Notes: generated by a model not told the origin, from the sequence alone. Shown: positions 1 to 46,005, counted from the stretch's first letter. The stretch is DNA of 64,000 nucleotides from Auanema rhodensis (GCA_964057225.1 OZ059899.1:9548001-9612000); one strand, 5' to 3'. Numbers and translations: made by a program.

Positions 1-3000
1 GGCATTAACGTAAGAAGTTAATGCTTCTTCCAGCGTTCTATGTAGTCGTTCCACTTGACCATTTGCGTTTTTGTAGTATGGCATAGTTGTGTGATGTTCC
101 GATCCAAGGTTATCGCACATGCTTTTGAATTCGTGTGAGACAAAGTTTGATCCATTGTCTGTGATGATTTTCTTTGAGGGTCCGAAGACATAGAATAAGT
201 GTGTCATAATAGCTGATACTATTTCTTCTGATGTCTGACGAATTAATGGTATCGCTATAATCCATTTGGAAAATGCGTCCTGTATAGATAAAATGTATCT
301 ATTATCCTTTGCAGTTCTAGGTAATGGTCCTAGTATGTCCATGTGAACTCGTACCCATGGATGTGTCACTGTTGGGAAGTTTCTCATTGGTTCAACTGTG
401 GCTTCATGTGGGTTATTTTTCCTCTTTGCACAGTCGAGACATCTGTTCACATATCTTGTGATATCATCCTGTATTCCTGTCCAAGTGTACCGTCGCAAAA
501 TGGAGTCTTGAGTCTTATTGATTCCAAGATGTGCTCCGAGAATGGGGTCTTTGTGGAATTTCTCGATAATTGGTGTGGTAATTGATGAGTCACTTGGCAG
601 AATAGCTCGTGGAGTTTGTAGAGCTGATTTGGGTTTAGCGTATAGAACATCATTCAAAACAATGTATCTATCCGTTAGTTGTGTCCCAGCGTTGTTATTT
701 GACAGCTTCTCTTTAGTTTCTTTGATCCATTCTGTGTCGTTTTGAATGGTCCTTAGGTCTGTTACTGTTGAGATTGTCGAAACTTGATGGGATGTTGTCT
801 TTATTGTCGGCTTCTTTTTCCTTTCTTTTGTTTCGTTAATTTCGTCCTCAAAGTACTTTGATAAAGCGTCGCAAACGCTATTAAGGCGTCCTGGGCGATA
901 GATAATTTCAATGTCATATTCTTGGAGTACTATTTGAAATTTGGCTAATCTTCCAATAAGATCTTTCCTCGTCATAAGACTGGTTAAAGGTCTATGATCG
1001 GTAATAATTTTGATCGGTGCCCCTAGGATGTAGGTACGAAATTGGTGAACCGCAAAGGTTAGAGCTAAGGCTTCAATCTCAATGGGGGGATAGTTCCTTT
1101 CTGCTCTGTTCAGTTTACGGCTAGCGAAAGCTATTGGGTGCAGTGGTTCTCGATCGTCCGCGGATTGCAATAAAACTGCTCCTACTGCAATAATGCTTCC
1201 GTCGCTTTCGACTACATATGGCCGTTTTGCTCTAGGCGCTTGGAGGACTGGTGCTTCGCAAAGTGCTTTCTTTAGGTGTTGAAAAGATTTTTCTTCTTTG
1301 TCTCCCCATGTGAAGGTTTTATCCTTTTTTGTGAGGTCATAAAGCGGTGATGCAATGCCTGCGGCATTCCTAATGAATCTCCGGAAGTAGTTTACAACTC
1401 CCATGAATGCTCGAACTCCTGTGATTGATTTTGGTCTTGGATAATCTTGAATTGCTTTTACTTTCTGAGGGTCTGGTTTTATTCCTTCGTGTCCAACAAT
1501 GAATCCTAGGAATTTGACTTCTTGTTGTCCAAAGGTACATTTCTTAAGCTTGATTTTCAATCCTAGCTCTGCTGATGCGTTCAGTACTTCGGCGATATCT
1601 TGTAAATGTTTTGTCGTTGATTCCGATATGAGAAGTAGATCGTCGAGATAGACGAAGAGCTTGCATCGTACGTGTTGTTGTAAATATCGTACTGCATTTT
1701 GGAATGTGTGTGGAGCTCCGCAGAGTCCCATCGGCATTCTGCAGTATTGATAAGTTCCGCTCGTAGTAGTGAATGCGGTGAGGTGTCTATCTTCTGATCT
1801 AAGAGGGATTTGAAAGAATCCAGATACTAGATCAAAGTTACTGAAGATACGTGCTCCGGCTGCTAGGTCCAAGATATCTTGAATGTTAGATATAACGTAG
1901 ATTTGTTTTTGCGTTATTGCGTTAAGTGCTCGAAAATCAGTCACAAATCTATACGTTTTATCCTTTTTCTTGACCAATATTACGGGACTGGTAGTCATAG
2001 AAAAAGATGGCTCAATTATTCCTTGTTCTAACATTTCCTCCACTTGTTTTTCTACTTCTTCTTGTTGTGATAGAGGTATTCTGTACGTGATCTTGAAAGA
2101 TGGAACTTTTCCTTCGATGATCGGGATGCTATGTTCCACTGGTCCTTTGAAAAGTCCGATATTTCGATCCTCGTTCAAGAAAGCTTCCTTATTTCTAAGT
2201 ACTATTTTCTTTAATTGTTGTCTTTCTAATTGAGTGAAGATGGAATTTGAGACATCTAGATCTTTTATGAAATCATCTGGGAAGAATGGTAGTTGATCTT
2301 CCCATCTTGCTTCTGGTGGTACATATTGTCCTTTTTGCTCCTCCGTGTTTTTGGGGATAGCATAAGCTGTTCCAATGCCTTGGTTTGTCTGGACTTCGAT
2401 TGTATCCGAAGAGATATTTGTAGCAAATATCTGGACTCCATATCCTGTTGGGGTGAAAGTTGTAGGCGCAAAACTCATTTTTCCTGCTCGTTGTGAGCTT
2501 CTAATGAAAGCTTGTTCGAATGAGGCGGGATCATTTACTTCCAAAGTTAGAGATCTTGTTTCTCCGGGGTAAAATTGTTTAGTTTCCAGACTAACAACGT
2601 GTGTAATTGTGTGTTTTTCTGTCCATGCATTGTAGTTTTGCGCTAGAGGTACCGTGGTATCTCCAATCAGCAATGAATTTTGCAGAGGGCGTAAGGATGT
2701 GAGGATTCCTTCTCTGTTGAGTGCTTCAATAAAATCTATTCCAAGCAATATTGGTGCTGGGCAATGATTGTCGGAAGATATCAATATTTTGTGGTCAATT
2801 TCGGTCTTTCCAATTATTATTGGCAGTCTTGTATATCCTAGGAAGGAAAATCGAGACTTGTTTGCTACAACAGCTGTAGTTTTCTCAGCGACCATTTTTG
2901 CTGCCGGTAATTGATTGAAAGTGCTCTCTTTCATATATGAAATTGATGCACCTGTATCCCATAGTGCAGTAAAAACTTGGTTGTAAATTGATATGGGTAC

Positions 3001-3040
3001 GAATGGTAATCGGGATCCCCCAATGTAGTTTATCTTTGAT
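1..3040 (-). CDS. pol: pol region: aspartic protease, reverse transcriptase, RNase H, integrase (open off the left edge)
   Basis: Manual translation gives LWDTGASISY (~2950), RFVTDFRALN, FSNFDLVSGFFQIPL, MPMGLCGAPHTFQ, YLDDLL (~1650), RNaseH ESDGS..VGAVLLQ / EIEALA / TDHRPL, and IN FHKDPILGAHLG..CLDC, VHMDILGP, TDNGSNF, NGQVER. Same frame as 4956 downward; absent from the ORF track, consistent with no stop before the edge. Confidence 0.95.
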
Positions 3041-6000
3041 TCTTTAATAGCGTACCTGGGCAGATAGGTTAGCAGATCGCTATCTGTTAATGGTGCATCG
3101 GGATCATAGCGTGAAAGTGGAGCATGGTAGTTGTCTTGTGTCGCTCTTCTTAACGGCTGAAGTTCGGTCTCTTGGGCTGGATGTTCTCTTCTTTCTTCAT
3201 CATCTTCTTCGATATAATTGATGGGAATTCTTGTGACACGTGCGTATATTTTGATTCCGTAAAACAGCGCGGTGATGAGTCCTATTATCACGATGATTGC
3301 GCCGATTGTGGCAAGTGTTCTTAATAGCCAGGCCTTGAAAGTTTCTCCAATAAAAGTGAAGAAGCTGGAAATTCCTTCTTTTGCCGTGTTTCCGACGATG
3401 TCTCCCACTACGATAGGAATTGTTATGGCATTTTCAAGGATGTTGAGTGGATTCAGACTGATTCCTTTCTTGTTGTTAAATATAGGTTTCAATCTTCCTG
3501 GCAAAGTGGCTTGTAGAGAGGCTAGACTGGATCCGTATGAAATAGCGAGTTCAAACGGGAATGAAGATTCCGTGAGGTTGGCATATATGTTGGAGTTGTT
3601 GAATTTTATGTGATCGATTTTGATCGACGTGAGTTCGTCCGCAAATGATAGGTTCGTCACATTTAATGTTGTGTTTTCCTTCATCCATTGGTCGTTTAAT
3701 TTATATGGATCCGTTGTAGCCATCATGCAGTCGATTCGTCTGCCCATTGGTGAAATATCACGTGTTCCAGGTATTAAAAACAGTTCTCCATGATGTTCTG
3801 TATCTACTGGTGTTTCCATGTAACATGTTCCGTTTCTTTTGTGATCCGAGTAGATTTTTGTTACGTGGATAGGTGTGCAAGGCATTACGTAGATAAGGTG
3901 TTCAGCAACGAATTTAGCTGATATATCCTGACGTCTAAGCATTGTGCGGATACCAATAGTTGGGTTGATTTGTAGAATGGCCCACCACGTAAGGAGTTGT
4001 TTGTTTTGCATCCTACAGATGTCCTTTTTCGTTTTTTGAAACGCCTTCAAAATTTCTTCTTCTAGTTGCGAGGTTGAATATTGTAGATGCGATTGTGTAT
4101 CCAGTTGACGTAATTGTTCATCATATTTCTGGATGATATCATGTCTTGTACGAAGAAAATTAACGTGTGCTTGCTGTCCTATGTGAGATTGAACTTCTCT
4201 TGCTTGTTGAGGTGTTGTGGCGGCTCGTTTGGTTGTTGTCCTTGGCTCTATCACTGTTGAAGAGATTTGCGGAATTTCTGTTCGCGTTACAAGCTGTGTT
4301 GGTAATGAGAATGGCGTTGTCGTAGCTTGATAGTAGTGATATCTTCTTGGAGTAGTTGTAGAGCCTGGTGATAATGTTCTGGGAGTGTGAAAAGGTTTGG
4401 GAGTAGTTCGAAAAGTTGTTGTTGTAGTCGCGTGCGTAGTAGAGCTTGTAGTGCTTGCGGAAGTCGTGGTAGTCGTAGTCGTTGTTGTTGAATACGTGAG
4501 GGAGTCGATTAATTCAAGATATGTTCGTTGAAATCTCTCGCTTTCTTCCTGTGAAATAGTTTTAGTCGTTGGTGTACCACGTGGCAGTCCAAAGTTCTGA
4601 GCTAGTCCTTTAAAGATGATTGCGTAATTAGGAAAAATAATCCTTGGACTAGTTGATTCCTCTTCCAATTTATTCCACTTTCTGCTCTCTTTTTCGCGTT
4701 CTTCTGTTGATATATGTAGCAGACGATTATGTGATGCTATATAGTCAATAAAGTTTAATACTTCGTCGATTTGTGTGTAAAACGAAGTGTCCATTCTAGG
4801 AGTTGTTCTTCTCGACATCCTAGGTGGGTATAGTTGAAATAAATATTCTTCTAATGAAGGAATCGTTTCTCCTGTTGCTAATACTGCGGGAGTTTGTGCG
4901 ATTTCAAATGCAATGTCTCTCGCTCGCTCTAAGTAGTCTCCTGTGCGTTTTCCAACTTATCGGCGAACTCCTTAATCGTGATTTGTTTACTCAGTTTTTC
5001 TGTGAGCTCAGATGGTAGGAGATGCGCGATAGCAATTTCTGTTGCTAGGAGAATTTCTGCTTTTGCCAGCGCATGTAGAATGGCGATATTAGTGTCGTTG
5101 TAGTTGTACCATAATAGTGTTTCCTTGATCGCGATTGCGTCTAACTTGAGGAATTTTGTAAGTCCTACGTGAATACTGGAAGTTTTCAGATAGTCTATAA
5201 GACTGTAAGAATTATCCAATCTTTTCCGGTTGCGATACTTCTGATACATTGGAATAATTCCTGTAGAGCTGTCCGTAAGACGTAACGATGGATATATGGT
5301 GATATTGAAAAAGCGTGTAGGGTATTCTTGTGGCGCTTTCCTTTTCTGTCGTCTTGGAGTCTCTTTAGGTGGTATATGAATGTATGTACCACTATTCGTT
5401 GTATTCATGTATATCCTTTCCTAAACATCGAGTTGCTATGTTATCCGGTTTCTGGTCTTGGAGGATTAATGCGCTCTGTATCTCCGAGATTAGGACAGTG
5501 TCGTTGTTGACAAGTGCTGAGAAGTTTCCTAAGGAGCTGAAGTCACATTCGTGATGGTCGTGAGGTGGTGTCCAAACGATTATGGCATTGTGCGTTGTAC
5601 AAGTTCCTGCTTTCTTTGCACATCCTTCCGTGTTGAGAAAAAGGTCTGATATGATGATATCGTCATGTAGACAAGTCATCATTCCTCTTTCTAACGTTAA
5701 TCTTGGAGTTGTGGTGCAAGATGTAGACCAAAATGAGTAAGACTGATTGTTTAAAGGTAAAGGTGCCTTAAATAGTCCTGGAGCTGTACGTACAAGATTT
5801 GTATCCATATGTCTTCTTTCTTGTATAGCTTCCTTACATTCCTTGAGAGTCGCGGCTTCGACGTAAAGTAGAGTGATATTGTTTTCTCTAATGAACAGTC
5901 TATCGTGAGCACATGTTCTGTAGATTTCTTTGGAGCATTTCCAAGCCTCCCATTCCTTGTAATGCATGTTTTCTGCGAATAATTCGACGTTAGTAATTTG

Positions 6001-6153
6001 AACTCCATCCTTGTGTATGTTTTCTGAGCATAAAGTAGGGGGTTCGAGAAAGATGCCTCCTCGTGTTCCGGTGCATAGATGGTAGGTGTTGTCTGCGTGA
6101 CAAGGAAGTATTGTCAGTGCCATGATGGAAAGGAAGAGAGGTGTGAATGGAAG
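3041..6153 (-). CDS. env: envelope glycoprotein, class III fusogen (herpes gB / chuvirus G-like); two frameshifts (~5400 and ~4950)
   Basis: Internal signal peptide LPFTPLFLSIMALTILPCHA (6153-6094), Cys-rich ectodomain with N-x-S/T sites, RRQKR furin-like site (~5345), Thr-rich tract (4500-4210). gB-like DICRMQNKQLLTWWAILQINPTIGIRTMLRRQDISAKFVAEHLIYVMPC..CYMETPV..C (4030-3730). TM LATIGAIIVIIGLITALFYGI (~3320-3252). Confidence 0.85.
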
Positions 6154-7779
6154 TTTCTTGTTGCTCGTGCGGGGTGTTTCCTTGTTAACTTGGTTAACAT
6201 GGAATCGTACTGATGGGCTTCTTGTGCGATTTCTGTAGCGCGAATTAGGTCCATATGATTCATGGTGATCTCTGTTCTGGTATCTTCGATCGTACTGGTT
6301 TCCGCGATGATAGTTGTTGTTGTATCTGTTATCATAACGGTCGTTATACCTATTATTTCTGTGTGGGCTACGGTAGTTGTTTGGTCCTCTTGAGCGTGGT
6401 CTGTTATTCCTGTTCCTGTCGTTGTATTGATGGTATCTTCCTGTTCTTCTTTCATCGTTATGACGGTATCCTCCTCGTCTTTGGTGCCATGGTTCTTGAG
6501 GTCTTTGTGGATGTGAGGAATTGTCGTGTGGCCTGGATGATAGATGTGGTGCCGGTCCTCTATGAATTTTATCACGCTGTGGAGCTCTCATGTGATTGAT
6601 GTGCTCGTTATTGATATTCAAATCATCTAGTCCATCGGTTAAGTTGTTGATGAAGGAAGAGGGGTCCTCATCTGCTTCAACGGTTTCAGCGATTGTGACG
6701 GCTGATTCAAAGGTGGTTGGGCTTCGATTATTGACGTGCGTACGTAGTTGTTTCCGTAATCCACCGAGGAAAGCTACACGTTATATACGTTCATCAGCAT
6801 CGGTGTTCATATCGCTTGCTTCATAAGCCAGATTTCGACAGCGTTGTGCAAAATGGTTGACAGTTTCACTCTCTCCTTGCTTCATGTGAGTGAGTCTGGT
6901 GAACGCGGCATCTCGTTTCTCTTGAGGTTGAAGTTTGAGAGACAAAATGCGCTTTACGTTATTCCATCCTTGACGTATTTCGTCCGGAGTTATGCAACGT
7001 AAAGCATCGGCTGCTTTGTCCGTCCCCAACAATAGATAGAGGTGCGACAGACGCTCAGCCATAGGTACTTGCAACGCGTCAAAATAACCTTCCAATCTCC
7101 TCATGTAGAGGTTAAAAGGTACTGCTCCATCATACAAGGTGGGTTTATGGTGGCGAATAGAAACAGTGTTCGTGGGTAGCATGCGGAAATTAGAGTTGTT
7201 TTGGGTTTGATCATTGGAGTTTGGGTGGTCATCCATCCGGTCAGTCATCTGAGCGATTTTTCTCTTCTCTGCAACATTCAAATTGAAATTGGTGGTTACT
7301 TCCGACGGAGAAGATACAGGAGAAGAAGATTGCCCATGTAATGATTGATCGGATGAAGAGGGAGAATTTCGAGGAAGAGGAGAAGAAAGAATAGCAGTAT
7401 TTGGGTATGAAGATAAAATTTGAGAATAATCTTTACGAGGGGAAGTATTTGTGCTAACATTACTAGAGCTTTTGATAACATTAGAAGTGCGTTTTGGAGT
7501 TTGTTTGCTAATAGACGCTTTAATTTTACTTAGAGTAATAGCGTGGCGAGAAGTTTTAATAGCTGTTGTGCCTATTTTCTTCGCGGGGGTACCCGGTATA
7601 GCGGGTGGTTTCTTTGCAGCAGTAGGTCGGCGCTTCGTGTCCGGCTCATAAACATTTGGAGGTCCTCTTTTTCTTTGATTCCGCTCGAGTACTGGCTCGA
7701 CGTGCGTATCATTACCGGGGGCTGCGCTCTGTGGATTTGTTTTATCCTGCGGAGGATTTTTACTCTTCGAGTCCGTCAT
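6154..7779 (-). CDS. gag: gag (capsid plus R/N/Y-rich basic tail); one in-frame TAA at 6781-6783
   Basis: PTLYDGAVPFNLYMRRLEGYF and MKQGESETVNHFAQR retrotransposon gag motifs. The frame continues after the TAA as RVAFLGGLRKQL..PTTFESAVTIA into ORF 5392..6621. Confidence 0.88.
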
Positions 7780-8561
7780 CTTGTTGGTTTTCCTGGAAAG
7801 GAAATTATTATACCAACGATGCGAATCTTATAAAAATATATATACAACGTTAGAGGCAATATGGGGTTGTATGCGTGACGCTTGCTAGGGGGCCAGCCTG
7901 CAGCGAATCTTCTAACGGAGAATTGCTCAATCGGGTACATACACGGGCCTGTGACCGGTGCGCCCTTTCTAGGATCAAGTTCCCATCTCTCGAATAGGCG
8001 TGAAATATACGACGGTGATCTAAGCAGTATTCCCTTTCAGTCTTTCGACAAGATTAGGTGCTCAGGCCTCGTACATTCACTTTCCCAGACTTCTCTTGCC
8101 TATGAAAAATCACAGAAATCGCTCCCTTAACGAAATTCTGCTCCCCTGATTTTTCATGGTGAGACCACTCTAACACTTTCATTCTCGACTAATTCTGTCG
8201 TAATTTTCAAATTTGCAAAAATAGGACCAAAAAGGGATCTTCAAAATCAGGAATGCGTACGTCTTATATCAAAAATAGTGGTTGCCTCCGCTCAGTTCTC
8301 GAGACAGTCTGGTATTGCTTCTCACGGGCTACTTTTAGGATCAAAAAATGCAAAATTGTAAATCTTAGGTTCGGGATTCAGATAAAAAATTTCAAAATTA
8401 TTTGGCTGTTTTCTGGGTTATATTAGGAAGAAGAGAAAAAATAATAGTAATAAGAGAGGGAAAAAGATAAAATTTAAAAGAAGATAAAAGAAAAATAAAA
8501 TAGGAATATAGTAGGAATATAGTAGGAATATAGTACTAGTATAGAATAGTTTTGTACATAA

Positions 8562-35270: not shown

Positions 35271-35308
35271 GGCCGCGTGGCGCAATGGATAACGCGTCTG
35301 CCTACGGA
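35271..35308 (+). pseudogene. 5' half (nt 1-38) of tRNA-Arg split by the composite MULE; ends in TSD GCCTACGGA (35300-35308)
   Basis: tRNA sequence stops at the GGCAAACTGAC TIR. Confidence 0.93.
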
Positions 35309-35497
35309 GGCAAACTGACAAGTTTACCAAACTTTAGGTTTACCAAACTAGGTTTACCACGCAATAGACAAGTTTACCATAGTTATATGGTATACCAGGT
35401 TTACCAGGTTTACCAAATTATACCTAATATTAATTTGTGAACACTTTGCAAGGTTTACCAAGTTTACCAAATTCATCAAGTATACCAAGTTTACCAA
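35309..35497. repeat. TIR (outer, A) built of GT(T/A)TACCA sub-repeats
   Basis: Inverted match to 39320-39500 and 45782-45961. Confidence 0.9.
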
Positions 35498-35878
35498 AAA
35501 AATATCTTTATACTAAGTATACTAAAATACAAAAGTTGTAGTTTGAAATTTTATGTTTTTTTCAAATTAGAGATTATACTATCAGGAAAAAAATTTTTAC
35601 ATTAGTTGAACATGAAGTGTGAAAAGAATCGAAATTTAATTTTTATAAAACTTTCCGTTTCGCATGTTTTCTTTTTGTGGAGCAGTTGCATACATGAAAA
35701 GTGTTCATTAAAGATGTTAAGCAATCGTTCTAACTGACCTTTTAATAATGATTCTCAGTTTGGTGAGAGTGTGTGATGGATCAATATTGTAAATGAAATC
35801 AAATATATAGTTTGAAATATGTTAGTTCACTCACCTTATTCAAGTTTATTAGTATCCAATTTTTGTAGCTACGGCACT

Positions 35879-38769
35879 TTATGAAAGTGAGTAGTAGCGA
35901 TCCTGTTGTCCTGATGGGCCTGGAATCAAAATCTCTTCATCTGAATCGGCTGTCGTACTGTAATAAAAAATTATTTCGGGACAGTAGTGTTAAACTTACT
36001 CCATGTCATAGTAGTTTCTTTTACGGTTCGTTTTGGAGAATTGCGAACCAAATCGTCTCTGATCGAATTTAGACCCGTCAGCTGGTCTCAATTGCTCGGA
36101 TTGCACGTCTCTTGCTGTTCTCTCGTTCCTTTTCCGTTCCAGGTTTTCAACAATTGCATTTTTTTTATTTTCATTCTCCAATGATATGAAAACAGCTAGT
36201 CTGAAACAAAAATATACTTAATTGTACTATAAATTTAAGAAACCTGTGATGACATAGAGCGTGTTTCGGACAATTTCGCTGAGAACATCCTGGGCTTGAG
36301 CATACAAGCTCATTATTAACTTCATTGACGCATCCCAATCTGAAAAATTAATAATAAACTTTATTACGAATTTTCTCAGCTTACGCTCCAGTACTGTCTT
36401 TGGTAAAATATATACCCGCTTTTGCAGCAGGAAATACCTCCAAACGCTGAACAGTTTCGAAAAACACGTCAGCATTATTAGTTCCTACTGGCTCACTCAT
36501 CCATGAGGGATAGTTCGACAACGTATTTTCAAAAATGAAGTCATTCAAACCAAAAAGTTTGAGTTTGTTCATTTTCTCAATACGTGTCATTACTAACCAC
36601 TCGTGGTTCTCAACATGAAAGTGAGTGGCCAGTTTGTCCGATTTCTGATGAATGGCTCCAATTCGATCTTTTATTTCTTCTATAATGAAATTAATTTTTT
36701 CTTTTTTTTGAATAGTTTAGTTACCTTCATGTAATTGCAGCATTTTTTCTAAAACCTGGTGAGCAGGAATTGGATGAGGCATTCTTGCTTTTAACTGAGC
36801 GTTTCTCGACTCTAGCAAGTTAGTGGAAAAAAATTGCTGGCTTTGCCCAGCTCTTAATTTTTGAATCAAACTATTTGTTTGATACAAATCTTCTTTATTA
36901 GCAATGAGCCTGAATCCAAAAAACATTAGTTAAAATGTTGATAAAACAAACCATTGTCGAGTTTTCTCTCCACAATTCATAATAATATCCTGCATTTTCT
37001 TCTCATATTCGTCACGAGTTAGGGACGATTAAGCCCCTTTCCTCATGATTGTTCCATATTCAGTCTTAAAACATAAAAATAGTGTTCAAAAACAATATCA
37101 AGTATACCTCTTTTTTTCTCCCGAATATTTTATGCAGGATATGTTCCTTTCTCTCAGCATCATCGTCTTTGCCGAATGTGCTTTTTATATTCTCCATTCG
37201 GTGCACGGAACATCTTAGCGGCACAGCATCTTTTAAAAATGATCCCTAAAATAAAAAACAATTAAACCTTATGTAAAAAAATTTCTTACAGTGTTGTATG
37301 CTTTGAAAGCATCTTCACCATCATGGCACAAACCAGCTACTTTTTTGTTCCTTCCATATTGAGATAGCATCTTGTTCAAATATGCCGAGAATGCTTCATG
37401 ATTGCCAGCGTTTTTGGTACTATGTACCATACATGCAAGCAATATGCCAGCGTTTTTACCAGATTTTTTTGACCTAAATTAACATTATAAAAAAAGATGT
37501 AACTAATATAATCTATACTTACGTGAACATATCCGAAACTCCGAGGGCTAGAGTGACATATTCGCCACTACTGATTGAAAATGTAGTATCAATCATTATG
37601 ATACTTCCTATTGTTGGTAGAGCTCCGGAAGCATTCACTTGATTCAAAATTCGCACTGGAAGATTAAAAAAGTTTCAATGCCTCAATTACAAAATACTCA
37701 CCAAATGCTTCCTTTGCCTCCTGTTTAGGCATGTATTGGAGATTGTCCACAAAGCGAAGATGGTCGTTCATATCTTCAACCGTTGGCAAGCAAGCACAAA
37801 AATGCTTGAAAGCCGTCGGGTATCCGACAATCTGGCAGAAGGCAATACCACGATCTTAAAAATCATTACTATTAAATTGATAAAAACTTAATTTAACCTG
37901 TTCTTTCCACTTTGATTGGTTCCATGTGCTCCACTTTCATACTCGCATTCACGAATCTATCAACGAGTTTATTGACATCGCTTGGCGATCTTTTGCCAGT
38001 ACCCGACTTGATGTGGGTGCTGACACTTCGGGCAAGACTAGTCAGCTAAAATAAAAAAATGTAGAAAAATAGCAAGCAATTTGTGCTGATATGCAGAATT
38101 AAATGAGACCCATACCTGACTGGAGCTAATTTCCATATTTTTTAGCACTTCCTTAGCAGCAGCTGTTGTTCTGTTTTCCAGAACATTTTTAACTTCTATG
38201 CTGACAGAGGGCAGGATTCTCTGTTTAGCGGGCACAAAATTTTCCAAAGATTCCTAAATATAGTACATAGAGCAAAAAGCAAAATAAGAAAACTTACCTG
38301 CACGTCATAAATGATAAGCACCGGCTCAACAATTTTTTCCTTGCCTTGTACAATCATATGAATCTAAAACAAAAATTAATTATATATCTTAAATGAACAA
38401 AAAACCTCTTTAGTAAGATCCATATCTGGTTTCTTACAGCGGATAGTTCTGTAAGAGTATTCGGTGCATTCATCCTTCGAGCAAAGGATGTATTGCCCGT
38501 CAACCAGTTTACAACCTCTCGAAGAGGTCTTGTTATTGATAGCAGGCAGACCATTGCCTCCTGAAACAAATTATATATAGAAATTTGAAAATATAAAACT
38601 GACCTTTTCTGTTCCATGGAACAAAGATATCCCGAGTGATATCCTTGTAGACAATAAATTGTCTTTTTGAAATCCTGAAAAAATTTTTACCCTGATGCAT
38701 GCCCAATAAATCAGGCATGCAATCAAGAACAGCAATGCTGTTATCGAAAATAAGTTCAAAAGCATTCAT
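35879..38769 (-). pseudogene. spliced MULE DDE transposase, ~15 exons, premature TAA at 37029-37031
   Basis: IMIDTTF, CHDGEDAF, RCSVH (CxxH), STNLLESRNAQLK, C-terminal CSSPGCSQRNCPKH (SWIM-like). GCT TAA where copy B has GCT CTA. Confidence 0.85.
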
Positions 38770-39319
38770 GATTGAAAGATTGAGAAGGTTGCGTTAAACT
38801 TGAAGTTTAAAATTGGTTTGATAAAATCAAATTATTTTTCATGTTTTAGATGATGTTCACAATTTTTGCTTTTTTCATGAACTATATATGACGCTCAATT
38901 GTCATCCAATTGATGGTAGGTGTCATTAATATGGTATACCGGAGGGTTCAACACGCGTTATAATCAACTCATGTTATATTTTTCTTAAATATGAACAATA
39001 TTTTTAACACTTATAAGACAATCTTGTCAAAAATTAATATTTATTTTTATTTAATTGTTCTATATTAGTCTACTTGAAACATTTTAGAAATTTCATATGA
39101 ATTAAGGTTCTTTGATAATAGATTCTATTTCAGATTACAAGAATTTTGAGATTAGGATGATTTAGATTTTGATTTTTCTTACTGTATCTTTTTAAAACTT
39201 ATATTTTTAAAATTACTCATCAATCATTTCAAAAAAAGCTTACATTTTCATATCTTTATCGTATTTGTTTGTTATACCTGGAAACTTCTTCAAAATACTC
39301 AAAACTCTTTTTAATCTAT

Positions 39320-39500
39320 TTTGGTATACTTGATAAATTTGGTAAACTTGGTAAACCTTGCAAAGTGTTCACAAATTAATATTAGGTATGCTTTGGTAAA
39401 CCTGGTAAACCTGGTATACCATATAACTATGGTAAACTTGTCTATTGCATGGTAAACCTAGTTTGGTAAACCTAAAGTTTGGTAAACTTGTCAGTTTACC
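39320..39500. repeat. TIR (inner, A)
   Basis: TGGTAAAC sub-repeats. Confidence 0.9.
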
Positions 39501-39550
39501 ACAATCTTCTGCTCCGTAGGCAGACGCGTTATCCATTGCGCCACGCGGCC
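39501..39550 (-). pseudogene. tRNA-Arg nt 1-50, cut by the MULE-A inner end
   Basis: Reverse complement GGCCGCG...AGAAGATTGT abuts the TIR. Confidence 0.92.
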
Positions 39551-41725
39551 TTGTTCAACAAAGATTTCAGAAACTCTTATGAAAAAAAAACTAAGACTAT
39601 TGTGATGAGAGAAATTAAGAGAAAAACTATGGAGCTGACATTACATTTTTCTACAATATCACTAGATTCGATATCATTGATATCCTGGAAACGTTATTCC
39701 TTTCCTTTTTTTATATCAAACGAGAGTTTTATGTAATCATAGAGAAATCAGTATCAGTCTGTTCTGTTGGAGAACTGTAAGACATAAAATTTCAATCTAA
39801 TAGGCTCTTTATCGAAGTAAATGTATAAGTTTAAATTGGATATCTAACAATCTTTTTCATTTTATTTCTTATTGTTTGTTTTAAAGTAGGAAAAACTAGT
39901 TCTTTTCTTTCTAATTTCCATCCCAAATGCTTTCGAATTCCAGGAAAATATATACGGCCTTGTTCACCTAAGATTTCAGAAACTCTTATGAGAAAAAAAA
40001 CTAAGACAATTGTGATGAGAGAAATTAAGAGAAAACCTATGGAGCTGACATTACATTTTTCTACAATATCACTAGATTCGATATCATTGACATCCTGGAA
40101 ACGTTATTCCTCTCCTTTTTTCATATCAAACAAGAGTTTTATGTAATCATAGAGAAATCAGGATCAGTCTGTTCTGTTGGAGAACTGTAAGACATAAAAT
40201 TTCAATCTAATAGGCTCTTTATCGAAGTAAATGTATAAGTTAAAATTGGATATCTAACAATCTTTTTCATTTTATTTCTTATTGTTTGTTTTAAAGTAGG
40301 AAAAACTAGTTCTTTTCTTTCTAATTTCCATCCCAAATGCTTTCGAATTCCAAGAAAATATATACGGCCTTGTTCACCTAAGATTTCAGAAACTCTTATG
40401 AGAAAAAAAACTAAGACAATTGTGATGAGAGAAATTAAGAGAAAACCTATGGAGCTGACATTACATTTTTCTACAATATCACTAGATTCGATATCATTGA
40501 CATCCTGGAAACGTTATTCCTCTCCTTTTTTCATATCAAACAAGAGTTTTATGTAATCATAGAGAAATCAGGATCAGTCTGTTCTGTTGGAGAACTGTAA
40601 GACATAAAATTTCAATCTAATAGGCTCTTTATCGAAGTAAATGTATAAGTTAAAATTGGATATCTAACAATCTTTTTCATTTTATTTCTTATTGTTTGTT
40701 TTAAAGTAGGAAAAACTAGTTCTTTTCTTTCTAATTTCCATCCCAAATGCTTTCGAATTCCAGGAAAATATATACGGCCTTGTTCACCTAAGATTTCAGA
40801 AACTCTTATGAGAAAAAAAACTAAGACAATTGTGATGAGAGAAATTAAGAGAAAACCTATGGAGCTGACATTACATTTTTCTACAATATCACTAGATTCG
40901 ATATCATTGACATCCTGGAAACGTTATTCCTCTCCTTTTTTCATATCAAACAAGAGTTTTATGTAATCATAGAGAAATCAGGATCAGTCTGTTCTGTTGG
41001 AGAACTGTAAGACATAAAATTTCAATCTAATAGGCTCTTTATCGAAGTAAATGTATAAGTTAAAATTGGATATCTAACAATCTTTTTCATTTTATTTCTT
41101 ATTGTTTGTTTTAAAGTAGGAAAAACTAGTTCTTTTCTTTCTAATTTCCATCCCAAATGCTTTCGAATTCCAGGAAAATATATACGGCCTTGTTCACCTA
41201 AGATTTCAGAAACTCTTATGAGAAAAAAAACTAAGACAATTGTGATGAGAGAAATTAAGAGAAAACCTATGGAGCTGACATTACATTTTTCTACAATATC
41301 ACTAGATTCGATATCATTGACATCCTGGAAACGTTATTCCTCTCCTTTTTTCATATCAAATAAGAGTTTTATGTAATCATAGAGAAATCAGGATCAGTCT
41401 GTTCTGTTGGAGAACTGTAAGACATAAAATTTCAATCTAATAGGCTCTTTATCGAAGTAAATGTATAAGTTAAAATTGGATATCTAACAATCTTTTTCAT
41501 TTTATTTCTTATTGTTTGTTTTAAAGTAGGAAAAACTAGTTCTTTTCTTTTTAATTTCCATCCCAAATGCTTTCGAATTCCAGCAAAATATATATGTTGA
41601 CAACAAAAAAACTTCTTAAAAAACGTTTTGTTCAACTGTGAATTTCTTATGACACATTGCAAAAATAATCGTTGAAAAAGATAAATTCGATTTTTATGAA
41701 TGACAAGTGAAATGAAAAAAATTTA

Positions 41726-41795
41726 CGACCACGGCTGGATTCGAACCTACAATCTTCTGCTCCGTAGGCAGACGCGTTATCCATTGCGCCACGCG
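41726..41795 (-). pseudogene. tRNA-Arg nt 4-73, cut by the MULE-B inner end
   Basis: First 3 nt replaced by the TIR; also a T63A change. Confidence 0.9.
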
Positions 41796-41960
41796 GGTAA
41801 ACTGACAAGTTTACCAAACTTTAGGTTTACCAAACTAGGTTTACCAAGAAATAGACAAGTTTACCATAGTTATATGGTATACCAGGTTTACCAGGTTTAC
41901 CAAAGTATACCCAATATCAATTTGTGAACACTTTGCAAGGTTTACCAAGTATACCAAATT
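41796..41960. repeat. TIR (inner, B)
   Basis: GTTTACCA sub-repeats. Confidence 0.9.
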
Positions 41961-42526
41961 AAACAAAATAGATTAGAAAGAGTTTTGAGTATTTTGAAGA
42001 AATTTTCAGGTATAACAAACAAATATGATAAAGATGTGAAAATGTAAATTTTTTTTCAAATTATTGATGAGTAAATTTGAAAGTATAAGTTTTAAAAAGA
42101 TATAGTAAGAAAAGTCAAAATCTAAATCATCCTAATCTCAAAATTCTTGTAAACTGAAATAGAATCTATTATCAAAGAACCTTAATTCATATGAAATTTC
42201 TAAAATGTTTTATCTAGACTGATATAGAACTTATTAATAAAATAAATATTAATATTTGACAAGATTGTCTTATAAGTGTTAAAAATATTGTTCATATTTG
42301 AGAAAAATAAGTTCATAAGTTAAACATAAGTTCATTATTACGCGTGTTAAACCCTTCGGTATACTATATTAATGACACCTACCATCAATTGGATGACAAT
42401 TGAGCGTCATATATAGTTCATAAAAAAAACAAAAATTGTGAACATCATCATGAACATAAAAAATAATTTGATTTAATCAAACCAATTTTAAACTTCACGT
42501 TTAACGCTTACCTAAATCTTTCAACT

Positions 42527-45388
42527 ATGAATGCTTTTGAACTCCTTTTCGATAACAGCATTGCTGTTCTTGATTGCATGCCTGATTTATTGGGCATGCA
42601 TCAGGGTAAAAATTTTTTTAGAATTTCAAAAAGACAATTCATTGTCTAGAAGGATATTACTCGGGATATCTTCACTCCATGGAACAGAAAAGGTTAGTTT
42701 TATATTTTCAAGTTTCTATATATAGTTTGTTTCAGGAGGCAATGGTCTGCCTGCTATTAACAACAAGACCTCTTCCAGAGGTTGTAAACTGGTTGACGGG
42801 CAATACATCCTTTGCTCCAAGGATGATTGTGCCGAATTTACTTACAGAACCATCCTCTGTAAGAAACCCGATATGGATCTCACCAAAGAGGTGTTTTGTT
42901 TATTTAAGATTTACAATTAATTTTTGTTTTAGATTCATATGATCGTACAAGGCAAGGAAAAAATTATTGAACCCGTTTTAATAATTTACAACGTGCAGGC
43001 AAGTTCTCTTATTTTGCTTTTTACTCTATGTACTATATTTAGGAATCTCTGCAAAACTTCGTGCCCGCGAAGCAGAGAATATTGCCTTCCGTTAGCCAAG
43101 ATGTCAAAAATGTTCTGGAAAACAGAACAACAGCTGCTGCTAAGGAAATGCTCAAGGATTCTGAGATCAGCTCTAGTCAGGCAAGTGTGAAAGTTTCATG
43201 TTTTTTCTACATTTTCATTTTTAGCTGACCAGTCTTGCTCGCAGTGTTAGCACCCACATAAAGTCGGGCACTGGCAAGCGATCACCCAGCGATATCAACA
43301 AGCTTGTTGATAGATTCGCAAATGGCAGCATGAAGGTAGAGCATATGGAGCCAATTAAAGTAGAAAGAACAGGTTAAATTTTATTTTTATTTGTTTTAAT
43401 AGTAATAATTTACATTCTAGATCGTGGTGTAGCGTTCTGTCAGATTGTTGGATACCCAGCAGCTTTCAAACATTTTTGTGCGTCATTGCCAACGGTTGAA
43501 GACATGGATGACCACCTCCGCTTTGTTGAAAGCATTCAATATTTGCCAAAACAAGAGGCAAAGGAAGCTTTTGGTGAGTATTTTATCATTGAAACTTAAT
43601 TTTTTTTCATATTTCAGTGAGGATTTTAAACCAAGTAAATGCTTCTGGAGCCCTTCCAACAATAGGCAGCATTATAATGACTGATACGACGTTCTCAATC
43701 AGTAGTGGTGAGTACATCACGTTAGCTCTTGGTGTATCCGACATGTTTACGTAAGTTTTCATTAATCATATCTTTTTTTAAAATTTTGTATATTCAGGTC
43801 GAAAAAATCTGGAAAAAATGCAGGCATAATGCTTGCATGTATGGTACATAGTACCAAACATGCTTCCAACCATGAAGCTTTCTCAGCATTTTTAAATAAG
43901 ATGCTCTCACAATATGGAAAACACAAAAGAATCGCTGGTTTGTGTCATGATGGAGAAGATGCTTTTAAAGCATACAATACTGTAAGAAATTTTTTTACAT
44001 AAGGTTTAATTGTTCTTTATTTTAGGGATCATTTTTAAAAGATGCTGTGCCGCTAAGATGTTCCGTGCACCGAATGGAGAATATCAAAAGCACATTCGGC
44101 AAGGACGATGATGCTGAGAGAAAGGAACACATCCTCCATAAAATATTTGGGAGAAAAAAAGAGGTATACTTGATATTGTTTTTAAACACTATTTTTATGT
44201 TTTAAGACTGAATATGGAACGATCATGAGGAAAGGGGCTCTATCATCACTAAACCGTGATGAATATGAAAGGAAAATCCAAGATATTGTAAGGAATTGTG
44301 GAGAAAGAACTCGACAATGGTTGGTTTTTTTTTTAATTCTTTTATTTTTTTTTAATTTAGGCTTCTTACCAACAAGGACGATTTATATCAAACCAATAGT
44401 TTGATTCAAAAATTGAGAGCTGGGCAAAGCCAACAATTTTTTTCAACAAACTTGTTGGAGTCGAAGAATTCTCAATTGAAAGCTAGAATACCTCACCCTA
44501 TTCCGGCTCATCAAGTTTTAGAGAAAATGCTGCAACTACATGAAGGTAATCAAAACATATTGAAAATAACTAGTAATTTTGTTATAGAAGAAATTAAAGA
44601 ACGAATTGGAGCCGTTCATCAGAAATCCGACAAACTGGCCACTCATTTTCATGTTGAAAACCATGAGTGGTTAGTAATGACACGCATTGAAAAAATGAAT
44701 AAGCTCAAACTTTTCGGTTTGAGTGATTTCATTTTTGAAAATTCGTTGTCAAGCTATCCATCATGGATGAGTGAGCCAGTCGGGACCAGCAATGCGGACA
44801 TGTTTTTTGAAACTGTTCAGCGTTTGGAGGTATTTCCTGCTGCAAAGGCAGGCATATATTTCACCAAGGACAGTACGGGAGCTTAAGCTAAGATTTTTTA
44901 ATTTGAGTTTATCATTGTTATTCCAGATTGGGATGTGTCAATGAGACCAATAATGAGCTTGTATGCTCCAGTCCGGGATGCACGCAACGAAATTGCCCTA
45001 AGCATGCTCTATGCCAACACAGGTTTCTTAAGTTTGAGAAACAAAATATTATATTTTTGTTCCAGGCTAGCTGTCTTCATATCGTTAGAAAACGAAACAA
45101 AGAAAAGAGCGATCGTGGAAAATCTGGAACGAAAAAGAAATGAGAGAACAGTTCGAGATGTACAAGCTGAGCAATTGAGACCAGCTGACGGATCAAAGTT
45201 TGATCACAGAAGATTTGGTTCTCAATTTTCGAAAACGAACCGTAAGAGAAACTACTACGACATGGAGTAGGTTTCAAATACCTCGATTTGTAATCAATTT
45301 TCATTATAGCTCAACAGCCGATTCAGATGACGAGATTCTGATACCAGGGCCAGGGGGACAACAGGAACGCTACTACTCACTTTCATAA
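42527..45388 (+). pseudogene. spliced MULE DDE transposase, ~15 exons; TAG at 42647-42649 and GT>TT donor at 44883
   Basis: IMTDTTF, CHDGEDAF, RCSVH, STNLLESKNSQLK, CSSPGCTQRNCPKH. Exon frame is supported by mostly synonymous differences from copy A. Confidence 0.85.
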
Positions 45389-45781
45389 AGTGCCGTAGCT
45401 ACAAACAAAAACAAAACAAAAACAACAAGAGCATTAATAAGGTCAGTAAACTAGCATATTTAAAATTTAATATTTCATTTCATTTACAATATTGATCCAT
45501 CACACACTCTCAGCAATTTGAAAATCATTATCAAAAGGTCAGTTAGAACGATTACTTAACATCTTTAATGAACACTTTTCATGTATGCAACAGCTCCACA
45601 AAAAGAAAACATGCGAAACAGAAGGTTTTTTAAGAATTAAAATTTCATTTTTTTAACACATCATGTTCAATTAATATAAAATTCTTTTTCCTGATATTAT
45701 TATCACTACCTTGAAAAAAAAACATACAATTTCAAACTACAACTTTTTGTATTTTGGTATACTTAGTATAAGGATATTTTT

Positions 45782-45961
45782 TTGGTAAACTTGGTAAATT
45801 TGGTATACTTGGTAAACCTTGCGAAGTGTTCACAAATTAATATTGGGTATACTTTGGTAAACCTGGTAAACCTGGTATACCATATAACTATGGTAAACTT
45901 GTCTATTTCTTGGTAAACCTAGTTTGGTAAACCTAAAGTTTGGTAAACTTGTCAGTTTGCC
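45782..45961. repeat. TIR (outer, B)
   Basis: TGGTAAAC sub-repeats ending GTCAGTTTGCC. Confidence 0.9.
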
Positions 45962-46005
45962 GCCTACGGAGCAGAAGATTGTAGGTTCGAATCCTGCCGT
46001 GGTCG
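45962..46005 (+). pseudogene. 3' half (nt 30-73) of the split tRNA-Arg, starting with TSD GCCTACGGA
   Basis: Continues the tRNA begun at 35271. Confidence 0.93.

Follow-up and report, generated by a model that had tools for sequence, protein, structure and literature searches.

A clade of nematode transposons integrates selectively into genes with internal RNA polymerase III (Pol III) promoters, namely those for transfer RNA (tRNA) and 5S ribosomal RNA (rRNA). Two members of the clade, here called A and B, lie in a stretch of the Auanema rhodensis genome 64,000 nucleotides (nt) in length (GCA_964057225.1 OZ059899.1:9548001-9612000; contig C7 of G000, 9,548,001-9,612,000), referred to below as the window, where a block containing both of them interrupts a tRNA-Arg gene between positions 35,271 and 46,005. 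The clade comprises cut-and-paste elements with a 9-bp target-site duplication (TSD), terminal inverted repeats (TIRs) of 150-470 bp with GG(C/T) tips, and a multi-exon transposase carrying a DDE core and a CxxH motif. All 24 of the junction events that could be resolved in the 181-Mb genome fall within Pol III genes (15 in tRNA genes, representing eight amino-acid types and one intron-containing tRNA, and nine in 5S rRNA genes), and 16 of them are two-ended insertions flanked by a 9-bp TSD. We consider it very likely that this selectivity is real. To the fuller explanation that we favour, in which a Mutator-like clade would reach Pol III genes by tethering to the Pol III complex and in which A and B would form a composite transposon, we assign a probability of about 0.62.

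The four ends of A and B share a 20-nt tip, GG(C/T)AAACTGACAAGTTTACC, which is present in the window at 35309 (+), 39500 (-), 41796 (+) and 45961 (-), with no occurrence expected by chance. The TIR tip of this A/B family is found 22 times in the genome, as opposed to none in a reversed control, and the flanks of all 22 occurrences were inspected. Two-ended copies occupy tRNA-Arg (TSD at nt 42-50, GAAGATTGT; C7:9.11 Mb, with a segmental duplicate at 9.13 Mb), tRNA-Gly(TCC) (nt 39-47, GCATTCGAC, also with a duplicate), tRNA-Gln(CTG) (nt 41-49, CTGCGACCC), tRNA-Leu (nt 52-60, GGAGGCGTG, with ends 86 kb apart) and 5S rRNA (nt 67-75, CCCGGTTAG). A truncated copy adjoins a 5S gene at nt 71/72, and one tip lies nested inside a degenerate copy that borders a tRNA-Met array. 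The sole ends of the family outside a Pol III gene belong to a 40-bp decayed TIR relic residing in another repeat (L031:2475-2520 and L035:1750-1885). The relic is located at the same point of that repeat at both loci, and in L031 it adjoins coding sequence resembling an IS1595/Merlin-type transposase. An additional candidate tip with two mismatches (L032) was rejected as a chance 20-mer. The initial annotation of the window had proposed that tRNA gene bodies are targeted, and that GG(C/T) junctions be collected across the genome. With all such tips read genome-wide, intact ends are found exclusively in Pol III genes; the proposal holds, for a class wider than it had named, in that 5S rRNA genes are included as well.

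Members of the A/B family fall into two subfamilies. F1 (A, the two other C7 copies, the tRNA-Gly copies and the truncated 5S copy; 98.3-99.8% identity) has sites in Arg, Gly and 5S genes, and F2 (B, the 5S copy and the tRNA-Gln copy; approximately 98% identity) has sites in Arg, Gln and 5S genes. When positions are expressed in canonical numbering, the 3' edge of the TSD lies 0-3 nt 5' of the B-box core (GGTTCGA or AGTTCAA) at four of the six distinct tRNA sites used by F1 and F2. From its sequence the family looks young, and is possibly active, because copies are 99.8% identical and their exons are open with canonical introns, and this apparent youth makes experiments with it feasible.

The same preference is evident among more distant relatives. 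A 629-aa protein from Auanema sp. JU1783 (P0001, described below) yielded 99 exon-level matches at many further loci of the genome, with 30-50% amino-acid identity. Twenty of these sister loci were fetched by score and blind to context, a sample that leaves out the weaker matches at C3:9.94 Mb, C5:11.136 Mb and C4:12.552 Mb. They represent about ten sister families with TIRs of 95-471 bp (146 bp in the JU1783 element). All readable TIRs begin with GG(C/T), and every copy with a readable end resides in a Pol III gene; three of the twenty (L042, L056 and L058) are truncated copies that lack such an end. Two-ended insertions with a 9-bp TSD occur in tRNA-Gln at nt 3-11 (L040, a solitary and now decayed gene that is not in an array), tRNA-Asp at nt 5-13 (L041), tRNA-His at -4 to +5 (L051), an intron-containing tRNA at -5 to +4 (L052), tRNA-Gly(GCC) at nt 2-10 (L044) and tRNA-Arg at -6 to +3 (L047), as well as in 5S genes at nt 7-15 (L039), -1 to 8 (L045), nt 9-17 (L054) and nt 17-25 (L057). 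Copies with a single readable end are situated in tRNA-His at nt 3/4 (L048), in tRNA-Arg at nt 3/4 (L055), which is also the position of the inner end of B, and in 5S genes at nt 78/79 (L046), after nt 28 (L043) and at about nt 3/4 (L053).

All of the sister-family events in tRNA genes are confined to the interval from -6 to +13 of the gene. Within family 5, whose TIRs are 99-100% identical, tRNA-Asp, tRNA-His and the intron-containing tRNA have each been entered. At several start sites the TSD duplicates the first bases of the gene, and the downstream gene copy is thereby left intact. The orientation of the element relative to its host gene, counted by hand, is the same in 11 cases and opposite in 6, with no clear bias. 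One family-6 element (L053; G000:C3:12610400-12615300) has a different arrangement, with 5S sequence running outward from about nt 4 on both sides; its TIR and flank together form a 986-bp inverted repeat of 99.5% identity, and it is not a simple TSD insertion.

In the window, the interrupted gene belongs to a tandem tRNA-Arg(ACG) array on the plus strand (10567-63122) that includes 27 intact genes in units of 608-3,481 bp. Transfer RNA sequence makes up 4.4% of the array bases, close to the approximately 5% counted in the initial annotation, whose placement of the four element ends in tRNA-Arg (nt 30-38, after nt 50 and nt 3/4) was also correct. The 5' part of the target gene (nt 1-38; 35271-35308, +) ends with the left copy of the TSD, GCCTACGGA (35300-35308), and its 3' part (nt 30-73; 45962-46005, +) begins with the right copy (45962-45970). 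The 10.65-kb block is therefore enclosed by a perfect 9-bp duplication of tRNA nt 30-38, which covers the anticodon (nt 34-36), and deletion of 35309-45970 in silico restores a 73-nt tRNA-Arg(ACG) that is called by ARAGORN.

Element A (4,192 bp; 35309-39500, -; subfamily F1) has its GGC tip at 35309 and its GGT tip at 39500, and is 99.8% identical to the copies at C7:9110911 and C7:9131354. Its outer TIR (35309-35488, +), which has about 11 subterminal G(G/T)(T/A)TACC repeats, and its inner TIR (39321-39500, -) are 180 bp each and 97% identical to each other. Element B (4,166 bp; 41796-45961, +; subfamily F2) likewise has 180-bp TIRs and one tip of each kind, GGT at 41796 and GGC at 45961; the copies at C3:13006120, within a 5S gene, and at C4:12554168, within a tRNA-Gln gene, are 98% identical to it. 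The two elements are in inverted orientation relative to each other and are 85.5% identical over their full length. In contigs from three public sequencing runs, a variant of the element has AAC in place of the 58 bp corresponding to window positions 36929-36986; it represents a further subfamily or an allele.

Between the two inner GGT ends lies an inverted array unit of 2,295 bp (39501-41795, -) composed of tRNA nt 4-73, the 3' spacer, five sub-repeats of about 420 bp, the upstream spacer and tRNA nt 1-50. The inverted tRNA-Arg nt 1-50 (39501-39550, -) adjoins the inner end of A, and the inverted nt 4-73 (41726-41795, -) adjoins that of B; the ARAGORN call for the latter (41725-41799) extends into the TIR. 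This inner segment is exactly one collinear unit of the 2,250 type, 96.9% identical to local units. The inner site of A, after nt 50, is the very nucleotide position at which, 470 kb away, another tRNA-Arg gene harbours a copy flanked by a TSD. Although the junction is the same, the sequence upstream of the tRNA at the inner end of A is of the window's array type rather than that of the 9.11-Mb locus. The same nt-50 site has been used twice, because the two tRNA-Arg genes differ in their upstream sequence.

The anatomy of the block strongly suggests a composite origin, because the TSD is perfect, the tRNA can be restored and the inner segment is one collinear array unit, and it is quite probable that the structure moved as one unit. 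An F2 element would have entered one tRNA-Arg gene at nt 3/4, and an F1 element would have entered a neighbouring tRNA-Arg gene at nt 50, with the GGT tips of both elements facing each other, tail to tail. The transposase would then have paired the two outer GGC tips, allowing the 10.65-kb block, including the array unit, to move into a third tRNA-Arg gene, where insertion in the anticodon loop would have made the 9-bp TSD. Derivation of both A and B by duplication of a single copy, whether through replicative inversion or sister-chromatid duplication, was rejected in view of their identity of only 85%. In the Tn5 and Tn10 composites of bacteria and in the Ac macrotransposons of maize, two separate elements are moved jointly with the DNA that lies between them. 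The block in the window resembles those systems in that two elements and the DNA between them would have moved via the outer ends, with a single TSD around the whole. It differs from them in that the partners are dissimilar (85% identity, two subfamilies), the cargo is a tRNA-array unit and both outer tips are GGC. The suggestions in the initial annotation that a redundant tRNA array acts as a safe harbour, and that targeting clusters elements and so generates composites, are reasonable inferences consistent with this anatomy. At the tRNA-Leu array (G000:C7:15994939-16081056; L018, L019), the GGC and GGT tips that share the TSD GGAGGCGTG lie 86 kb apart, and five partial copies (A coordinates 134/333-1916) lie between them in both orientations; the span is a giant composite or else a single element with very extensive interruptions.

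Neither A nor B contains a long open reading frame (ORF). Open pieces, present on the minus strand of A and the plus strand of B, are separated by stretches of 45-60 nt that start with GTAAG or GTTAA and end with TTTCAG or TTTTAG, as is typical of nematode introns. The predicted transposase gene of A (35999-38570, -) comprises about 11 such pieces with the motifs IMIDTTF (D), LCHDGED (D), RCSVH (CxxH) and TNLLESRN (E), and that of B (42726-45267, +) has the same exon set and motifs; over longer stretches these read IMIDTTF, LCHDGEDAF, LRCSVH and FFSTNLLESRN. By these motifs the protein is a transposase with a DDE core and a CxxH motif, and in A a Cys/His cluster follows the core (36174-36347). 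Database searches were run exon by exon or with P0001. When a 176-aa piece of B was compared by phmmer with 1.84 billion representative proteins, only four matches were obtained. The best of these (E = 2e-9) was P0001, an unnamed protein with the same motifs, whose 3,319-bp contig (L036) is exactly one element from tip to tip, with 146-bp TIRs, GG(T/C) tips and no flank. A homologue search with P0001 returned only P0001, and no tRNA or element ends were found on the contigs of two of the other matches (P0002 and P0004). By inspection, MIDTTF, HDGE, LRC[SD]VH and S(S/T)N(I/L)(I/L)E(S/A)(R/K)N are conserved across the approximately ten families and P0001.

The clade is probably Mutator-like, and the Mutator label that the initial annotation had attached to A and B is probable on the same grounds. 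Mutator-type elements have TSDs of 8-11 bp, typically 9, and all 16 two-ended insertions described here have 9 bp; their TIRs are long (about 100-500 bp), and those of the clade are 180 bp in A and 95-471 bp in the sister families. The predicted catalytic core, judged by inspection, contains C(2)H after the second D and (S/T)NxxESxN at the E position, as in Mutator transposases. In the ESM Atlas, MULE (Mutator-like element) domains are present in nine of ten feature neighbours and ten of ten structure neighbours of P0001, and the best structural match has a TM score of 0.83 over 269 residues, for an Atlas query model with a confidence score (pLDDT) of 0.59. A single-sequence AlphaFold2 model of P0001 had a pLDDT of 32 and was unusable. 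Ten exon pieces of A matched no Pfam family, and full-length P0001 gave no match to the Pfam MULE models (PF10551/PF00872) at E values up to 10, and only a sub-threshold match to DUF7747; a sequence search of the PDB with P0001 likewise revealed no relative. The scan of the genome with PF10551 recovered a different, canonical and intronless MULE with a 681-aa ORF (30 bits; L049, G000:C6:11320000-11323300). When the profile of the clade was compared with this element by hhalign, only the E motif was aligned (P = 0.08, compared with 0.4-0.7 for controls). At least 11 copies of this canonical MULE exist, and it forms a Mutator lineage of its own in the genome.

Several observations weigh against the explanation that we favour. 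The tally of 24 events omits six truncated copies without a readable end, of which four (L030, L033, L034 and L042) adjoin tRNA arrays, and for the other two (L056 and L058) the 4.5-5.5 kb retrieved revealed neither a tRNA nor a 5S gene. What was observed is a set of surviving rather than fresh insertions, whose pattern selection has helped to shape. Within the window's array, 87% of the 31-bp windows with a guanine-plus-cytosine (GC) content of at least 55% lie in tRNAs. The preferred sites adjoin the A and B boxes, the two most conserved words of tRNA genes, which keeps direct reading of the DNA a live alternative. The PF10551 genome scan gave no match at the loci of the clade, which bears on the Mutator label. 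For the composite, the footprint that might be expected at a donor site (tRNA nt 1-12 joined to nt 42-73) has no match in the genome; as such a footprint would be wiped out by gap repair or by loss of the unit, its absence is uninformative. In addition, the element is present in public runs under three organism labels from three studies, and no junction is bridged by the corresponding Logan contigs, which at a few hundred bases are too short to do so and give no verdict on the assembly.

One reading of these points is that there is no true targeting, the pattern being produced by a general preference for GC-rich or nucleosome-free DNA together with survival in redundant tRNA and 5S arrays that act as safe harbours. 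Most copies do lie in arrays, and plant MULEs favour open, GC-rich 5' regions (PMC7337890). GC preference, which the initial annotation had raised as an alternative, cannot be separated from tRNA targeting within the window alone, because tRNA is nearly the only GC-rich DNA in an AT-rich array. Genome-wide and positional data nonetheless argue against GC content as the sole cause, and we consider this reading quite unlikely. Over the whole window 36% of GC-rich 31-mers lie outside tRNAs, and neutral GC-rich DNA, such as window positions 1-8,000, has not been hit. The TSD sequences share no motif and range in GC content from 33% to 89%. Survivorship alone does not predict what is seen, because insertions into spacers would be at least as harmless as those that split a gene, and none occurs among the 24 events. 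A deliberately lenient null model lets insertions fall uniformly over the local flanks that were retrieved, themselves largely array sequence; multiplying the Pol III fractions of 13 TSD-confirmed events then gives 1e-12. Moreover, both tRNA and 5S genes are used, with sites at two landmarks rather than spread over the gene; a GC preference acting over 73 nt would not predict the clustering of sister-family sites near the start of tRNA genes, and the tRNA-Gln gene hit at L040 is solitary.

As the means of site choice we favour tethering, at roughly even odds on the strength of the insertion pattern. The transposase would find its targets via the assembled Pol III complex (TFIIIC and TFIIIB, with TFIIIA on 5S genes) and not via a DNA word, and tethering is favoured because no such word is common to tRNA and 5S genes, whereas both rely on TFIIIC, TFIIIB and Pol III. 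The pattern is compatible with this mechanism in that many types of Pol III gene are entered, tRNA and 5S alike, at sites defined by position, with F1 and F2 placed just 5' of the B box and the sister families between the transcription start and the A box. Tethering would also explain how near-identical elements come to enter unrelated genes at equivalent positions. More tentatively, a DDE transposase of Mutator lineage might dock on the assembled TFIIIC/TFIIIB complex and insert at a measured position within, or at the beginning of, any tRNA or 5S gene, with sister families tuned to different landmarks and with composites as a by-product. The main rival to tethering is direct recognition of DNA, as in Dada elements, whereby a DNA-binding domain of the transposase would read the A box (..AGTGG) or the B box (GGTTCGA) and cut at a set distance, with no involvement of Pol III factors. 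In its favour, the cuts of F1 and F2 fall immediately upstream of GGTTCGA or AGTTCAA in four tRNA species, several sister-family cuts are 0-3 nt 5' of A(G/A)TGG, and GGATCGGA, which follows a 5S site, resembles the B-box core. Dada itself uses the same tRNA regions (nt 8-13 and the anticodon) and 5S genes, and is thought to do so via primary sequence (PMC8869645). However, near-identical elements are also found in 5S genes without an A or B box at those sites, the neighbours of Arg 30-38, Arg -6 to +3, His -4 to +5 and 5S -1 to 8 have no word in common, and the TSDs lack a consensus; on balance, direct reading appears unlikely, if still the strongest competitor to tethering. The initial annotation had argued from the differing insertion points that no fixed sequence is recognised. 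The positions are not arbitrary, with the 9 bp immediately ahead of the B box preferred by the A/B family (four of six distinct tRNA sites) and the interval from -6 to +13 preferred by the sister families.

It might also be supposed that the block in the window never moved as one, and that it arose instead through separate insertions in place followed by inversion or ectopic recombination, or through an assembly artefact among near-identical copies. Element A is, after all, 99.8% identical to copies 470 kb away with which it has the nt-50 junction in common, the inverted elements are able to recombine with each other, the junctions are without read support, and rearranged relatives exist, such as the L053 element with its inverted flanks. 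Recombination between insertions at nt 30-38 and nt 42-50 would nevertheless produce unlike outer flanks, whereas those observed constitute a perfect 9-bp TSD and restore one tRNA. A simple misjoin with the 9.11-Mb locus is excluded by the sequence upstream of the inner tRNA, which is of the window's array type. We therefore regard such an origin as very unlikely, and retain the composite as the explanation for the block.

Elements confined to redundant Pol III genes are textbook examples of 'harmless' parasites, among them the retrotransposons Ty1, Ty3 and TRE5-A. What is new here is the lineage, the 9-bp chemistry and the apparent choice of targets by gene class rather than by sequence; the niche itself was already known. 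In the literature searched, Dada is the only group of DNA transposons reported to target such small-RNA genes (PMC3706591, PMC8869645), and no description of Pol III gene targeting by a Mutator-like element was found. Dada elements resemble the clade in being cut-and-paste DDE transposons with introns that insert inside tRNA and 5S genes (PMC3706591, PMC8869645), in being concentrated near the A box and the anticodon, in using multicopy RNA genes as harmless sites, and in being able to form tandem or nested insertions. Assignment of the clade to Dada was nevertheless rejected on the basis of several differences. Dada produces TSDs of 6-7 bp (PMC3706591), in contrast to the invariable 9 bp observed here, and has a DxxH motif (VRLDVWH) in place of CxxH (LRC[SD]VH). 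Its proteins are 1,000-1,400 aa in length with an N-terminal CCCC and a C-terminal CCHC finger, whereas the homologue examined here is approximately 630 aa. Its motifs ILKMDSTKKV, YVDRDCC, LDVWH and GSTSLESFH (Dataset S1) differ from those of the clade, and none of the clade's catalytic words appears in the Dada alignment. A given Dada family is restricted to one fixed site, set by primary sequence, in one type of small-RNA gene, while single subfamilies of the clade (at least 98% identity) occupy several positions in at least three gene types. U1 and U6 genes are further targets of Dada, and no hits in them were seen for the clade here.

With Mutator/MuDR (PF10551) the clade shares 9-bp TSDs, long TIRs containing subterminal repeats, and a DDE core in which the second D is followed by CxxH and the E lies in (S/T)NxxE(S/A)xN. 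It is unlike that group in that PF10551 has no match to P0001, to the exon pieces or to the loci, and maize Mu is not enriched at tRNA or rRNA genes, targeting instead the 5' ends of RNA polymerase II genes (PMC7337890). In their use of many Pol III genes, chosen by position and not by sequence, Ty3 of S. cerevisiae and TRE5-A and DGLT-A of Dictyostelium are functional parallels. Ty3 inserts at the Pol III transcription start via TFIIIB and TFIIIC, and the sister families are found at -6 to +13. Those elements, however, are retrotransposons that employ an integrase or endonuclease and insert upstream of or at the start without entering the gene, while F1 and F2 split the gene just before the B box. 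Pokey (piggyBac, 28S rDNA) and MuTAnT (a MULE, TA microsatellites; PMC4486113) are, like the clade, DNA transposons with a narrow, repetitive target; theirs is a fixed sequence, unlike the polymerase-defined gene class considered here.

The clade represents a second lineage of DNA transposons, unrelated to Dada, in the Pol III-gene niche, and one that seems to choose by gene class and position. If tethering is correct, its transposase would be the first DNA transposase known to select targets via a host transcription complex rather than sequence. Questions that become testable are how frequently the Pol III-gene strategy evolves, whether a simple DDE transposase can be steered by a transcription complex, which bears on the design of safe-harbour integration vectors, and whether the huge tRNA arrays of this nematode (about 28,000 tRNA candidates by a rough count) and the transposons living in them influence one another. 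New arrays could readily be seeded by composites with array units as cargo.

The genomic background is rich in such arrays, and tRNA bodies amount to at most about 1.1% of the 181 Mb. Long arrays occur for Arg, Gly, Leu, Met, Asp, His/Asn and Gln tRNAs, and 5S arrays are interleaved with U4 small nuclear RNA genes (L029). Both the arrays and the clade are found around 9-16 Mb on contigs of 21-27 Mb. In the window, whose overall GC content is 30%, a GC-richer stretch (40-45%) at 1-7779 precedes the array and served as the GC-rich background. Unit lengths, in the segment 39560-41600 as throughout the array, vary by multiples of about 410-420 bp; each sub-repeat starts with GGCC followed by sequence like that upstream of the tRNA, and so resembles a unit that has lost tRNA nt 5-73. 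Units containing transposase sequence are themselves tandemly repeated at two loci, as three copies of 4,006 bp, each with tRNA-Arg nt 4-73, at L055 (G000:C7:10177294-10186445), and as three copies of 1,944 bp at L056 (G000:C4:12846123-12850688). The inserted elements at these loci were evidently copied by amplification of the array. Finally, 5S genes at two loci (L043:1671-2016 and L046, approximately 2985-3025) are split near nt 65-69 by an insert of another kind, about 320 bp long and with the termini TGTCACGG... and ...GTCAAGCGACAG; it may be another 5S-seeking element that is unrelated to the MULE clade.

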